NCBI GenBank assembly: GCA_964035545.1
Contig: OZ037773.1
Span: forward strand, 5,175,751 to 5,239,750
Length of the DNA stretch: 64,000 nt
Direction of reading: 5' to 3'
From: Bugula neritina
Lineage: Eukaryota; Animalia; Bryozoa
Position numbers and translations under genes: made by a program. Below, piece after piece: positions 5,335 through 55,673 of this stretch (position 1 is its first letter; every line of letters begins with the position of its first letter). The notes under the pieces were generated by a model. That model was not told the origin of the DNA, searched no databases, and worked only from the letters and a program-made list of their open reading frames with translations.

Positions 5335-8300
5335 CTACTCCAGGTGTTTTTCACACACATATCTTATAGCATAATTATAGTTACAAGTACGGTCATTCCA
5401 CCGGAGGTTTGTGAGCATGGCAAGACAACTCCCTGTGTCATTGGGCTGACCAATAGAAAATCTGGTCATATTCACTGATTCACCATTATGCCATACCCAA
5501 TCATCATCATCTTTAGTAGCGCCCAACCATATTTCATATTTCCATGCTGTAAGCATTAAAGAATGCAATATTTAGATTTTTCGCAACTTTATTAGGTTTG
5601 AAAAACTTTTAATTATAGGTACTTATATATTATATTATAGTATATTATAATATATATTATATTACATTATATATATTATAGTAATTAGCTATAATGTTAT
5701 ATAACTAATTTATTAATTTAAATAATATGTGAGATAGTCGTAATAGCATATGTTATTATTTGTAATCAATACCTTCTTATATAAAATAATGTGGAATATA
5801 GTGTCAATATTAAATGTTTAAAAAATAATATGTTTTTAATAGGCTAGCAAATTAATTACAAGTTTGAAAATTTATCTAAGAGAATTTTAGATTAAAATGT
5901 TTCGATTCAGCTCAAACTTCTTTTGCTACTGATTTAACTCATCTGTTGAATATAGTGTGAATTAGACGAATTTAATAAAATATACTTTGTATCTACCAAC
6001 AAACCTTTACATAAGATTTGCTTAAAGTAATTTCGGCCTAGATTAAAAACCTTGACAATTCTCTTTAAATACATAGTGTTGTGTTTCAAGGAAAACTTGC
6101 AGCTTTCGCTATAAAGATATATTATGTTACTTATATAGGAAAGTGCAATTAAATACATTTAAGCCCTAAAATCAACCTCAGTGTTCATCAAAATATGATT
6201 AGGCGAGATTGTATATATAAATAGAACTCAACAATAAATTCTACACACTTTTATCACAGAATAAACAAGCTGATTGGCTAATTGCGTTATAAAAAACATC
6301 TTTATTTAAATTAACAAAGTTGAAAGTAGAAGAAAAGTCTCAGAATTGTAGTCAGTAATTGAACTAAATTAACGGCCCAATAATAATGAAGGCACTGTTT
6401 GCATACAAAGTATGCAATTACATCCACAATATATTTGCTGTTCTTGAGATTATGAATAATTAAATACTGTAACCTGATATTGAAACTTGTAAATATGTAT
6501 TTCATTGCACAGCTGTAACACGTGACATCTTTTACTTTAGATTTTAGCTTTAATAGTCTGTTTCCCTACACAATTTAAATAGATGATAAATTAGATTAAA
6601 TAAATTTAATATATTGCTATATTATAGTCTACCATGTAAATTTAATCAGACCTATTGTCTGTTTTGTGAACAAATAACCTTTCAGACTATGTTCATATAA
6701 CTAATCATTTTTATGTAACTTAAAAGTATGACTGTGAATTCATTTCAATTATTACTTTGGTAAAATACAAATTTCTTAACATGTTCCAATTTTCTGAATT
6801 TTTTTTATTATTTAGGCTAACCGCAAATGAAAAAAAGAAACATATAACTGAAAAATTTCAAAACACTTACAAGGTACTTTTGCCAACAGATTCTGATACC
6901 ATTCAATGACCTCTTCAGAGTTCAACATAAGTAGAGAAGCTCCAAATGATTGACATTCTCCTATGGCTTCATTTGCAGTTTTAGTCTCCGAGAAAAATTT
7001 AATGCAAGTCATCTTAACAGGGTTTAGTTTCCACCCATCAGTGCACATCACACTGCCAGGCTCTACAACACAGTGTCATCACACCATAACTTCCAGTAAC
7101 TTTGATGTCTATACTGTATAGTATTTAGAGAAGTAATCAACTTAATTAGTGTGAAGCATGACTTAAACTGAAGATACTAACTATAAATCAACACAAATGA
7201 AGTTTTAGCTAAAGAGTTATTACTTGCAATCGTAAGCAAGTTAAAATGTGCGGAAAATAAATATTTCTGATATTAAATCAACAAATAAAAAATAAGTATT
7301 TAAGTTCATCAGCTTCTTTTGTTCCACAAGCATGCTTAGGATTTTCTGCTATAGCTACAAAATATAAACTTATGTACAAAATGTTAAGTACAGTATACCT
7401 GTGTCATATATCACATCATAGGAGAGTTGGTCAGTGGGCCAGGTTTGATAGGATATGTTCTTGGACCAGAAACATTCCTGAGTAGAAGTCTTATAAGCAA
7501 AAGATTTACAGCCAGTATTTCTCAAACACTGTTTTGCACATCTGGAGACAGAGCTGAGTGTAACTGAAGTTGGACTCACTAAAACTCTGTCCATAGAGTT
7601 TTGATAGTAGTACAGATTATCTGTTGTGCTAAAACCCTGTAGGTTTACTTTTTGATTATATATCATATGTTTGTCATTCAATAGCTATATATAGTAGTAC
7701 ACGTGTTTATATTTTGTTAATACTACCATATAATATGTATCAACTTTTATTTAGCTGATATCTATAATGTATTTTTCACTCTTTTGATCAGCCAAATAAT
7801 ATAAATTAAATATTGATAAATAAGTTATTGATAAAATAATTACAATTACTTTAAAATACAGCTGGTATTTAATATTGCTATATAAAATATAAAATTATAC
7901 ATAATTGCAATAAACTTAGCATAATGATTTTTTTTAATGCGAGTATATAAACACTCATAAGTAGTTTAATTCAAATATTATAAAAGATTAAATTTTTCCA
8001 TGCTTGGAGATTCAAAATTTAACCAAATGATACTATCATGTTAAAATTGTTGCATTTTTTATTACAAAATAGTATAAGTTACAGCCAAACAACTTAATGT
8101 AAAACAAATTTGATTGGGATATTCAATAAGTAGATGTTTTTCACATTTTTGCATTCATTGTATATTGCGTATTGTTATTATATTTGGATTAATTCTATAT
8201 GCAACAATTTGCAATAACCTCAATCATTTGTAGAAATAAACTTTATATATATTAATTTACATATATTGTAATAAATGCAATCATTTAATTAAATATATTT

Positions 8301-8708
8301 ATGATAATCCAATTAAATATTAGAACTTTGGTTTATGCCATTTAAAACTATTACTCATTTACCTAATAAAATATTTTGGACTACTTTTTATTTGTTAATT
8401 ATATTCTTGATCCTGCTATTTGCATCTAGATCTATAACCATGCTTGTTTTGTCTATATGAGTTAGTTTAACAGGCTACGTGAGATATCACAATTACGACT
8501 GACTTGCAAGCCTTATAAAATAGAAAAACATATAGCGTAGAATTTTGAAGACTTTATGAGTACAAAGCAAAAGCTATCACAATTAACCCTAAACTCACTC
8601 ATCTTACATCAAGCGTAAAATTGGTTTAAATAATATAAATTATTATACCTGGTAAGTTGCCAAAAGGTAAAAGAGGAGAACCTTGTAAATAAAAGTCACA
8701 AACACCAT
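5335..8708 (-). CDS. Lectin gene 1: signal peptide + PAN/Apple + C-type lectin
   Basis: Exons 8649-8708 (MVFVTFIYKVLLFYLLATYQ), 7399-7636 ([17 protein letters not shown]...ECFWS), 6871-7062 (CTDGW...C), 5335-5546 (WLG...QPN...WND...YVCEK). All GT-AG and in frame. Confidence 0.9.
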
Positions 8709-52776: not shown

Positions 52777-53902
52777 TGATCACAATAATTATCTGAAATT
52801 ACTTGGCAGCAATTACTACATGTGATAAACTAAAATATATAAGTAACTATAACTAGCAACTATATAGTACCTGTATCTTTATGATCATTATGCATGTGAT
52901 CTTTATATGTATTTCCATACACTGGTAGTGTTATAAGCAAGTACAAATGCACTTAAAATGCTATTAATACACATGAACAAGTTTTTTTAAAACCTTCATA
53001 CACATCAAGAGGCACCTGTAAATCTGTGATAATAATAAGCAATCTATACTAGTTTCTATGTATGCAGAGCCCTAAAACCTTTACTGTGTGCCAGTTGTCA
53101 GCACTGGTTTTATAAAATGATAACCCTTCCAGTGCAAACATTGCCTAGCCATAATTTTGGAATTTTTCAACGGTATAAAAAAGCTTTGAATTTGTCTTCT
53201 CATCCTTAAAGGTTGAGTCTAAAATATTGGTGATGTCAGGTAAAGCAGTTGGTCATAGGTTCTTTTCTGCCATGCAGAGAAAGCTCTCAAAAGAGTTTAC
53301 CAGCATGTGGTAAGATATCAGCTTAACCCAAGTAAAAACTCTTGGAGTCAAGAGTTTTTCAAAGGAGTATGGAAACACCACGGAATTTTTATGTATAGTA
53401 GCTGTCACCGACTGTTCAAACACGATATTATTTTGCTGTAAAAAAACTTTTCCTATAAATTGGCTTTTATCTAATCTATACAACTGTTACTATACCTGTA
53501 ACATATATTAATCAGTTAGAGCTGCTATTTTAAAAGCAGAAAAGATTACTGTTTAATCTATAAATATAACTTCACAATTTACTTTTCACAAACAAAATAT
53601 TTGTCTAAGGATTGCAAGCTGAGCTTTAGTGTGTAAGTATATTTGAATGTCATATAATATGTAGAATGATTTTTCCAATATCACTAAATATCAAAATACG
53701 TAATTCTTCCAGTTCAGGAAATGTATTTCTGATCGATATGCATGTCGTTAGATATTTTTGCTTTATTGATTTTTCTGAACTTTGAAACAATTATATAGCT
53801 GCCAGATTTAAATATTTAACGATCAATCAAATTATACCTTACTGATTTCATAACCATAATTGTCACCGCTAGTCAGTCATGCATGAGGTCTCAGTAAAGG
53901 AA

Positions 53903-55673
53903 ATGGATAAGTGTGTTGCTGAACTTTTTATCCTCATTTTGATGTCAAATCTGGTTGAGGTTTGTGAATCTTTAAAAAATTATCTGCTCAACATATTATA
54001 TGATTCCTGGTGATACAGCAAAAACTATATATGTAAGAAATAATGTTTAATCCAAAATTGATTAGCATTTTTATATGTACTTCAAGTTGGAAAATTTAAA
54101 TTAGTAGAAGCCTGTTATATATATAGCTAATAATGCTTTAAAACATTACAGGAACATTATATAATAGTCTATTATAGTGTATATGAATTTGGATATTGTA
54201 GATCAATTAATATTAAATTATTGCAATTTTTAAGCATGAGTAAAATGTCTTCAAACCAGGAAGAACATCTTTCTTAGGTCATCAATTTATAATTCATTGG
54301 TTTATAGGTCATTGTTTTATATGTTATTGTTTTATTATAGGTATAATATTGGTTTATAGGTCATTGTCTTATAGTTCATTGGCTTTGTAGGTCATTGTTT
54401 TATATAGGTCATTGCTTTATAGGTCATGATTTCATATGTCATTGCTTTGCAAATCATTTTGTACATGTCATTGTTTATAGGTCATTGTTTTATATGCCAT
54501 TGGTTTACAGGTCATTGCTTTGTAGGTTATCATTTTATAGGTCACTGTTTTATAGGTCATTGGCTTTACCGATGCCATATTTAAAACTCAAAACACTACT
54601 CAGAGAGTACTACTCAACCCTGCTATAGCCAAAATACCATCTCGTAACACCTGTGCTATATAACCTGTTTGGTGGATGACCGCTGCATCGCATTTGCTTA
54701 TAATTCATCTGAGGAACTTTGCTATTCTTCTGACCAAATGTCGTCTGCTGAGAACTTAGCTTCTGTCACAGGCTATGAAATATTACATGTTAAAAGTTAG
54801 TAATAATGCAATATATTTTCTTTATTTTTATTTCATAAAAAGTAATTATAATAAGACTCCTACAATAAATGGTGGGGAGAATCAAAGTCTATTAGACGAT
54901 ATTTTAATTTGTTTCTAAATTAAACTATAAAAGATCACGTAATTATTTTACATTGATGCATTTTTGAGCAAGCACAAGCCTCAAGCACTATTGTAGCAAC
55001 TGTATAGTCTTTTCTAAGTATTTTGCATAACATGGTGTTTTGTTAGTTTTGACTTGTGAGGATGATTGCATGGGTAATGAACTCCATCAGCAAGACCTGT
55101 GTAAGTATTATCCGAAAGAAAGCAAATGTGACAACAGCCCGAGAGCTTTGCTCAAAGCAGCAGGCAAGGCTGGCAGTGTTTGACAATAAAGAAGCGTATG
55201 ATTGGTTCACAACATACAGGATTGAAAATAACTGTAAGCTCTTTATTTGCTCTTTATAAAGCTATTTGTCAATAAAACAACACATAGTGGTTCTGAGTCT
55301 ATTGGGTTGTTTTATGGCAGTTAAACAGAAGTTATTTTTCCTACAAAATTCATATTTGGTCACACCATCACAAAATTTAAAACTAGAAAAGTGTTGGTTT
55401 GACACTCGATTAGCCAAAGAATCTTTGTATATGTGTATATTGTTGACAGGGTATCTCACAGTCCCAGTAACAGTGGGGGCTACGAGAGACATAGTAACAG
55501 GAAGCTATAAGTGGGATACTGGAGCTTCAATCCCCATTGAAGACTTCTACAAAGGAGCATCAAAAAAGAAGAAAGATTGCATTCAAATGCTCTCCAAGAA
55601 GAAAAACGTTCAATACGATGATTTGGATTGCACAAAGCGATTGAGATATGTTTGCGAAAAGTCCCTGATGTAG
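53903..55673 (+). pseudogene. Lectin gene 11: disabled duplicate of gene 10
   Basis: Exons 53903-53959, 54556-54795, 55047-55233, 55450-55673. A +2 nt insertion near 54660 gives an immediate TAA. A +4 nt insertion lies near 55067-55070. EPN is replaced by ASK. Confidence 0.8.

Follow-up and report, generated by a model that had tools for sequence, protein, structure and literature searches.

The 64,000-nucleotide (nt) stretch of Bugula neritina DNA analyzed in this study, referred to below as the window (C9:5,175,751-5,239,750 of the 216-Mb assembly; GenBank contig OZ037773.1), contains ten loci in which a PAN module is joined to a C-type lectin-like domain, hereafter CTLD. With a probability of roughly 0.8 by our estimate, they are part of a lineage-specific tandem array of secreted lectins of ~230 amino acids (aa), composed of a signal peptide, a four-cysteine PAN module, and a long-form CTLD encoded by two exons (CTLD-N and CTLD-C), and this array was diversified by the ordinary mechanisms of multigene families. 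Tandem and segmental duplication enlarges the array, unequal crossing-over with intronic breakpoints yields PAN/CTLD chimeras such as gene 3, and short-tract gene conversion (130-260 nt) homogenises single exons, linking genes that are non-adjacent or lie on opposite strands. The outcome is a few PAN types and, in the upstream part of the array, also one CTLD-N type, laid over old and divergent sugar-binding CTLD-C exons.

The tblastn searches with exon peptides from open reading frames (ORFs) of the window recovered exactly ten PAN, CTLD-N, and CTLD-C exon triplets, with genes 1-6 on the minus strand and genes 7-10 on the plus strand. Nine loci are intact, and gene 10 is a pseudogene. The exon ends, which were set by following each frame as far as an AG acceptor or a GT donor, define a four-exon plan common to all ten loci: a hydrophobic signal exon starting with ATG, then the PAN, CTLD-N, and CTLD-C exons. 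The splice sites are AG/GT throughout, with the exception of the CTLD-N acceptor in gene 10. The PAN exon has phases 0/1, the CTLD-N exon (183-192 nt) has phases 1/1, the CTLD-C exon runs from phase 1 to the stop codon, and the spliced models are open in all nine intact genes (627-651 nt without the signal exon). The shared plan had been proposed in a preliminary description of this stretch, made by reading the sequence, and is confirmed here; the fixed PAN exon length noted there holds in the window (genes 1, 2, 4, 5, 6, 7, 8, and 9 have 238 nt, gene 3 has 235 nt, and gene 10 has 240 nt) but is not universal, since the PAN exons of the eight additional genes located upstream, u1-u8, are 241 or 244 nt long with unchanged phases.

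Signal exons of 17-22 codons were predicted at all ten loci. Each begins with ATG, encodes a hydrophobic segment, and ends in phase 0 at a GT donor, and many have Q as the last residue. The signal exons of genes 2, 3, and 6 are kept in a related species, including the ATG and the donor, and that of gene 2 encodes identical amino acids there. At the other end of the protein the stop codon follows directly after the last CTLD cysteine, and hence there is no membrane anchor. Judged by the hydrophobic N-terminal exon and the absence of an anchor, the proteins look secreted.

The array extends beyond the window, whose DNA is AT-rich (~30% G+C) with numerous microsatellites and gave nothing at the gathering score in Rfam and tRNA scans. 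The genes u1-u8, all on the minus strand, lie directly upstream at C9:5125327-5171260, that is, 4.5-50 kb before the window, so that the whole array comprises 18 loci in ~106 kb (C9:5,125,327-5,231,420); the same search of C9:5.11-5.25 Mb found no further member past either end. Genome-wide, at least 120 exon matches to PAN_1 and at least 100 to Lectin_C were found, and among the matches listed the two cluster together only at the C9 array. Samples from the extensive PAN clusters of chromosomes C1 and C3 contain gene types other than PAN+CTLD. Further, the upstream part of the array bears an apparent segmental duplication, in which u2/u3/u4 resemble u5/u6/u7 (97-99% identity for u3-u6 and 96-99% for u4-u7). 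Both u4 and u7 carry an identical frameshift near the start of the PAN exon; thus the break is older than the duplication.

The assignment of the two modules is supported by profile and structure comparisons. All nine intact PAN exons passed the Pfam family PAN_1 (PF00024; 24.5-41.5 bits, cut-off 21.4), whereas PAN_3 gave, where listed, 12.7-15.8 bits and stayed under its cut-off of 21.1. Profile matches of the PAN module include HGF N domains (E 1.6e-7) as well as plasminogen, factor XI, and the PAN lectins of apicomplexans. The structure that AlphaFold predicts for the PAN exon of gene 5 (pLDDT confidence score 83) has only PAN modules as top Foldseek matches, with E-values of only ~1e-3, in agreement with the PAN fold of a helix packed against a curved sheet and core disulfides; its TM-score normalised to the query is 0.65-0.70 to plasminogen and HGF and 0.57 to the Sarcocystis lectin SML-2. 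Four cysteines are invariant in 20 PAN sequences, and the outer, third disulfide of the apple type was not found in the PAN exons, where only these four are conserved. By these features the PAN module is assigned to the HGF/plasminogen N-domain type rather than to the factor XI-type apple domains. Among the CTLD-C exons, the four tested (genes 1, 6, 7, and 9) passed Lectin_C (PF00059) with 24.2-33.2 bits against a cut-off of 22.6, in alignments spanning profile positions 40/41-107. The CTLD-N exons taken alone had no Pfam match, but their profile, compared with the PDB, aligns with the N-terminal half in CTLDs of known structure (E down to 7.7e-7), including those of the mannose-receptor family, CLEC4A, CD69, and DC-SIGN. 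Alignments of 17 genes classify the CTLDs as long-form, with four core cysteines, an additional N-terminal hairpin pair, and a WIGL-like motif.

Evidence for recombination comes from the conflicting histories of the two modules. In agreement with the preliminary description, which reported few PAN types combined with many divergent CTLDs, the window contains four PAN types (genes 1/4/5/7, 2/3, 6/8, and 9/10) paired with more divergent CTLDs. For instance, genes 4, 5, and 7 are 82-90% identical in PAN and 30-59% in CTLD, and the corresponding values for genes 2 and 3 are 77% and 45-50%; in genes 3 and 4 the relation is reversed, with 34% identity in PAN and 80-88% in CTLD. The same contrast is observed in synonymous divergence (dS). 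In the pairs 2-3, 4-5, 4-7, and 5-7 the PAN dS is 0.18-0.24 and the CTLD dS ranges from 1.6 to saturated, whereas in the pair 3-4 it is ~1.7-2.0 for PAN and 0.3 for CTLD, so that synonymous divergence differs tenfold among exons within one gene pair. Synonymous sites show the contrast no less strongly, and a pattern of this kind can result from different ancestry but not from selection on the protein. Maximum likelihood trees of PAN and CTLD, built separately, are not congruent, and approximately unbiased (AU) tests reject the clades of the other domain (p 6.5e-28, 9e-4, 1.4e-3, and 6e-4). Finally, runs of identical polymorphic sites exceed those in Sawyer-type permutations, with pairwise p ~0.0005 and array-wide p 0.01-0.03 for the pairs 5-7, 4-7, and 6-8. 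On these data, the PAN/CTLD contrast stems from copying and recombination rather than from a difference in rates, and the two modules have different histories.

The clearest case is gene 3. In blastn comparisons its similarity to gene 2 extends from the upstream region across the signal exon, the first intron, and the PAN exon and ends 30 nt inside intron 2. Its similarity to gene 4 sets in 77 nt ahead of the CTLD-N exon and continues across the CTLD-C exon into the 3' flank, where genes 3 and 4 likewise match each other. Read as transcribed, the genes follow one another as 4-3-2, with gene 3 between its two parents. This arrangement identifies gene 3 as the duplication product that a single unequal crossing-over of gene 2 with gene 4 leaves behind, with the breakpoint in the 91-nt intron 2 (14981-14891). 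An 11-kb contig of the related species is collinear with this region (84-89% identical) and has the same 4-3-2 order, and thus the crossing-over predates the species split and an assembly error at genes 2-4 is unlikely. In the related species the CTLD-N exon of gene 3 is shortened by a deletion of 19 nt, and the dN/dS (the ratio of non-synonymous to synonymous divergence) of the gene 3 PAN exon is 0.72. The chimera may be decaying in the related species.

A different mechanism is suggested for genes 1, 4, 5, and 7. Their PAN similarity stays within the exon, with an overrun of at most ~20 nt, and neither the introns nor 2.2 kb of upstream sequence align by blastn. The shared tract is 97% identical over 199 nt between genes 4 and 7, 92% over 226 nt between 5 and 7, and 91% over 264 nt between 4 and 5; genes 1 and 4 share a tract of 136 nt that lies inside the PAN exon and is 95% identical. 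Gene 7 shares its tract with genes on the opposite strand, such as gene 4. On this evidence, short-tract gene conversion is the best explanation of the PAN sharing. The tracts are confined to the exon because conversion starts and ends only where the paralogs are still alike. In the upstream genes u1, u2, u4, u5, u7, and u8 the nucleotide identity is 84-94% in PAN, 89-97% in CTLD-N, and 58-83% in CTLD-C, and for the pair u1-u4 the dS is 0.33, 0.13, and 1.23, respectively. Here both PAN and CTLD-N are homogenised and CTLD-C is divergent; hence homogenisation cuts through the CTLD. The unit of exchange is the exon rather than the domain. In the one public run, which is of genomic DNA, there is a 3- to 8-fold increase in summed contig depth exactly at the PAN exons of gene 7 (35130-35329) and gene 8 (39330-39529), most likely from the stacking of contigs that carry paralogous PAN exons of near-identical sequence.

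In gene 5 the signal and PAN exons are flanked by direct repeats of ~350 nt (27034-27386 and 28568-28919), which are 92-97% identical and spaced by 1533 nt. The possibility that they mobilise a signal+PAN module was considered and rejected, since the repeat belongs to a genome-wide, partly tandem family of 95-98% identity, with at least 763 candidates and arrays of ~272-nt period. A hammerhead-like core, CUGAUGA...GAAAC, is visible in it by eye, but the hammerhead families of Rfam gave no match at E <= 1.

The C-terminal exons differ in the motifs that line the Ca2+-dependent sugar site. QPD occurs with WND or WDD in genes 3, 4, 7, u3, and u6, genes 6 and 8 combine EPN and FDD, and mixed QPN or EPD occurs in genes 1, u4, u7, and u8, while the Ca2+-site motifs are altered or lost in genes 2, 5, 9, u1, u2, and u5. 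The motifs of Ca2+ site 2 are canonical or near-canonical in genes 1, 3, 4, 6, 7, 8, u3, u6, and u8. Such variety fits a set of soluble lectins with differing sugar preference, some of which are perhaps no longer sugar-binding. We suggest that the proteins would be soluble and bind glycans in a Ca2+-dependent manner, with sites of the galactose type (QPD) or the mannose type (EPN), of a mixed type, or lost, and that they would recognise microbes or other glycans. Binding to proteins or carbohydrates, and the ability to form dimers, are established for PAN modules in HGF, factor XI, and the apicomplexan PAN lectins, and the PAN module of the array would supply a common second binding or oligomerising surface.

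The same genes, with the same evolution, could instead serve a non-immune purpose, for example in mucus, cuticle, egg coat, adhesive or digestive secretion, or in the attachment of symbionts. We regard this as a possibility of real, though lesser, weight. Both PAN and CTLD occur in adhesive, matrix, and clotting proteins, the structural matches of the PAN module are to HGF, plasminogen, factor XI, and the leech antiplatelet protein, and several copies are without canonical sugar-site motifs. However, the QPD/EPN variety and the lectin-like and defensin-like genes in the neighbourhood fit recognition or defence at least equally, and nothing speaks directly against a non-immune role.

It is improbable, in our judgement, that the array forms a germline combinatorial recognition repertoire in which the re-pairing of modules is itself selected. 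If it did, conversion might keep the PAN module uniform for docking to one partner, such as an effector, a receptor, or an oligomer interface, while the divergent sugar-binding exons give specificity. Alternatively, read-through transcripts might splice a PAN exon to the CTLD of the next gene, given the compatible phases and the head-to-tail arrangement, and thereby add diversity. The preliminary description had regarded the modules as interchangeable because their phases match; this match says little, because all paralogs inherited one gene structure, and the PAN exon, with phases 0/1, is no symmetric shuffling module.

Somewhat less probable still is an explanation by selection, in which PAN is kept near-constant by purifying selection, the CTLD evolves fast under diversifying selection, and the genes are otherwise co-linear duplicates. 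The high PAN amino-acid identity, well above that of the CTLD in several pairs, would be expected under it, and a few CTLD-C exons have a dN/dS near or above 1, namely u2 compared with its ortholog (1.20), the young pair u2-u5 (1.04), and the pair u4-u7 (one synonymous versus eight non-synonymous changes). Some sugar-binding exons thus may be relaxed or positively selected. But the PAN/CTLD contrast is as strong at synonymous sites, by which this explanation is largely refuted, the pair 3-4 shows the reverse, and the trees conflict. Between species, where the orthologous exons keep their splice sites and frames, the pooled dN/dS is 0.39 for PAN, 0.27 for CTLD-N, and 0.33 for CTLD-C, so that PAN is not the slower part. 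Strong constraint is seen in the gene 6 ortholog (0.10-0.24), the CTLD-C exons of genes 3 and 4 have a dN/dS of 0.15, and most pairwise values lie between 0.1 and 0.6; neither the pairwise nor the between-species values contain a family-wide signal of diversifying selection. The picture of a rapidly diversifying secreted family with a semi-constant PAN and a fast CTLD therefore stands in part: the proteins are small and secreted-looking and their motifs differ between copies, whereas the difference in rate is not borne out.

Least probable is that the array is largely a graveyard, in which most copies are unexpressed relics whose frames are open because they are young: the frameshifts in gene 10, u4, and u7, the deletions in u6 and in the gene 3 of the related species, and the elevated PAN dN/dS of gene 3 would agree with it, but nine of the ten window genes have open frames and all splice sites, the orthologs retain frames, splice sites, and low dN/dS, and the CTLD synonymous divergence is saturated, which makes the open window genes old.

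Several observations nevertheless weigh against a tandem array of functional secreted lectins shaped by ongoing exchange. The signal peptides were judged from hydrophobicity and conservation only. No spliced joints were found in the sole public run that holds this stretch, which is of genomic DNA with contigs spanning the introns. The sugar binding is deduced from motifs, and genes 2, 9, u1, and u2 are among the copies without them. Unsound copies are present: gene 10 has 2 extra nt in the PAN exon at 54657, which shift the frame, and 1 and 4 extra nt in the CTLD-N exon, where the acceptor AG is gone; u4 and u7 are frameshifted as described above; u6 lacks 21 nt of CTLD-N; and the gene 3 of the related species has its 19-nt deletion. 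The clades used in the AU tests were picked after the identity matrices had been seen. Finally, the dS of the PAN tracts is ~0.2, near the dS between the species, so that the conversion may be an old event and not a continuing one.

The gene models are listed in Table 1, together with the copies of a dispersed repeat.

Table 1. Exon coordinates (window positions) and sugar-site motifs of the ten PAN+CTLD loci, and positions of a dispersed repeat
Feature	Position (strand)	Signal exon	PAN exon	CTLD-N exon	CTLD-C exon	Motifs
Gene 1	5335..8708 (-)	8708-8649 (predicted)	7636-7399 (238 nt)	7062-6871	5546-5335, including stop	QPN / WND
Gene 2	9432..12674 (-)	12674-12609 (or ATG at 12644)	11779-11542 (238 nt)	11239-11048	9640-9432	degenerate QAD / WVQ
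Gene 3 (chimera)	13690..17232 (-)	17232-17170	15216-14982 (235 nt)	14890-14699	13889-13690	QPD / WND
Gene 4	19694..21581 (-)	21581-21519 (predicted)	21392-21155 (238 nt)	20614-20423	19893-19694	QPD / WND
Gene 5	24188..28261 (-)	28261-28199 (predicted)	27652-27415 (238 nt)	26796-26605	24387-24188	RPN / WYD
Gene 6	29656..32083 (-)	32083-32033	31580-31343 (238 nt)	30345-30163 (183 nt)	29870-29656	EPN / FDD
Gene 7	34537..37560 (+)	34537-34593 (or donor 34575; predicted)	35142-35379 (238 nt)	36190-36378 (189 nt)	37346-37560	QPD / WDD
Gene 8	38806..40587 (+)	38806-38856 (predicted)	39238-39475 (238 nt)	39680-39865 (186 nt)	40370-40587	EPN / FDD
Gene 9	48272..51012 (+)	48272-48328 (predicted)	49088-49325 (238 nt)	49571-49756 (186 nt)	50786-51012	EPN present, second motif degenerate
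Gene 10 (pseudogene copy of gene 9)	53903..55676 (+)	53903-53959 (signal-like)	54556-54795 (240 nt)	55043-55233	55450-55673 (frame open)	EPN lost
~210-nt repeat copies	L001 4829-5036; window ~51360-51590, 45280-46214, 41689-41902, 16856-17084					

An eleventh secreted-looking gene is located within the array at 42961-44976 (-), with a signal-like ATG near 44955. It contains two PAN-like exons (~44437-44264 and 44036-43800; PAN_1 31.7 bits) and two exons with weak F5/8-type-C or NedA-like matches (16.4 and 13.4 bits, below the cut-off). Its internal exons, read by eye, are all of phases 1/1, and the PAN exon of the lectin genes is 0/1, which makes it a different exon module. The ~210-nt repeat (~85% identity) is present on every large contig and on contigs of the related species and is probably a SINE- or MITE-like element (short interspersed element or miniature inverted-repeat transposable element). 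The window also contains a 79-aa ORF with a cysteine-rich C-terminal part and no Pfam match (59601-60288, +) and, at its left edge, an ORF fragment of an unrelated gene with the string GIFRQPGS, typical of RhoGAP (2839-3381, -).

The sampled PAN clusters elsewhere in the genome are of other kinds. A separate tandem array at C3:29754001-29764000, with a ~4.5-kb period, has a six-cysteine PAN exon that ends at the stop codon and is preceded by exons without an assigned family, one of which encodes the string H-x-C-x-T-W; a pentraxin-like signature seen there by eye was not confirmed by Pfam. The C1 cluster (2.8-4.2 Mb, sampled at C1:3400001-3410000) consists of genes with several PAN exons and an exon for a transmembrane tail, and in the sampled segment it is interrupted by a reverse-transcriptase ORF of 519 aa.

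The individual components of the array resemble several known systems. The PAN fold is shared, by profile and predicted structure, with the N domains of HGF and plasminogen, the apple domains of factor XI and prekallikrein, and TgMIC4 and Sarcocystis SML-2, which are galactose-binding PAN lectins of apicomplexans; the HGF N domain likewise has four core cysteines. Unlike these proteins, the genes of the array encode one PAN module only, without the outer disulfide of apple domains, and join it to a CTLD. The CTLD itself is similar to the long-form Ca2+-dependent CTLDs of the mannose-receptor family, DC-SIGN/CLEC4, and soluble C-type lectins (CTLs) of invertebrates in its six cysteines, the WIGL-like motif, and, in many copies, the QPD/EPN and WND-like motifs, but it is preceded by PAN instead of a neck, collagen, or transmembrane segment, and several of its motifs are non-canonical or lost.

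Hybrid genes and exon-restricted conversion are familiar in tandem families such as the anti-Lepore globins and the major histocompatibility complex (MHC), Ly49/NKG2, and snake-venom CTL clusters. As in these families, the array has a hybrid between two parents with an intronic breakpoint, namely gene 3 in its anti-Lepore arrangement, and short tracts that homogenise one exon amid unalignable introns. In contrast to those families, the exchanges in the array fall between two domains, and between both exons of one domain; thus they re-pair binding modules and do not merely homogenise paralogs.

The closest parallel in domain content is the class IV of CTLD proteins in Caenorhabditis elegans, which combine one or two CTLDs with one or two CW/PAN-3 modules and number 16 genes in the published table (PMC5297725). 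As in that class, the array encodes secreted proteins with a PAN-superfamily module and a CTLD in a large, clustered, lineage-specific family. Its PAN, however, scores with PAN_1 and fails PAN_3, and its genes have strictly one PAN and one CTLD in four exons. Nor did the sequences show a relationship to the nematode proteins, in that the top 150 PAN profile matches among 1.84 billion representatives include no comparable CTLD. By these features the array would work like the nematode class IV without being a member of it.

Searches for relatives gave little. Homologous proteins were sought with the long ORF around the gene 3 CTLD-N exon and with the gene 5 PAN frame, and none was found, in searches whose length window and word filter weaken such blanks. 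The PAN profile had 540 matches among 1.84 billion representatives. The only close ones are unannotated ORF fragments in two JGI metagenomes, which come from a related animal. A CTLD like that of the array is present in none of the top 150 profile matches, Lectin_C was absent from ten short matches scanned with Pfam, and metagenome contigs searched with the gene 5 PAN contained no confirmed relative. The novelty is limited: this is a lineage-specific tandem family of secreted lectins, its mechanisms are textbook, and the pairing of a PAN-type module with a CTLD is already known.

Nevertheless, the array is a clear and bounded case of an innate-type recognition family that builds variety by intronic crossing-over and exon-sized conversion. 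Having no annotated relatives in very large protein sets, the family would be missed by homology-based annotation of the genome. Finally, a pattern of a constant and a hypervariable module need not mean diversifying selection; here it is mainly a matter of copying, and this alters which experiments make sense.

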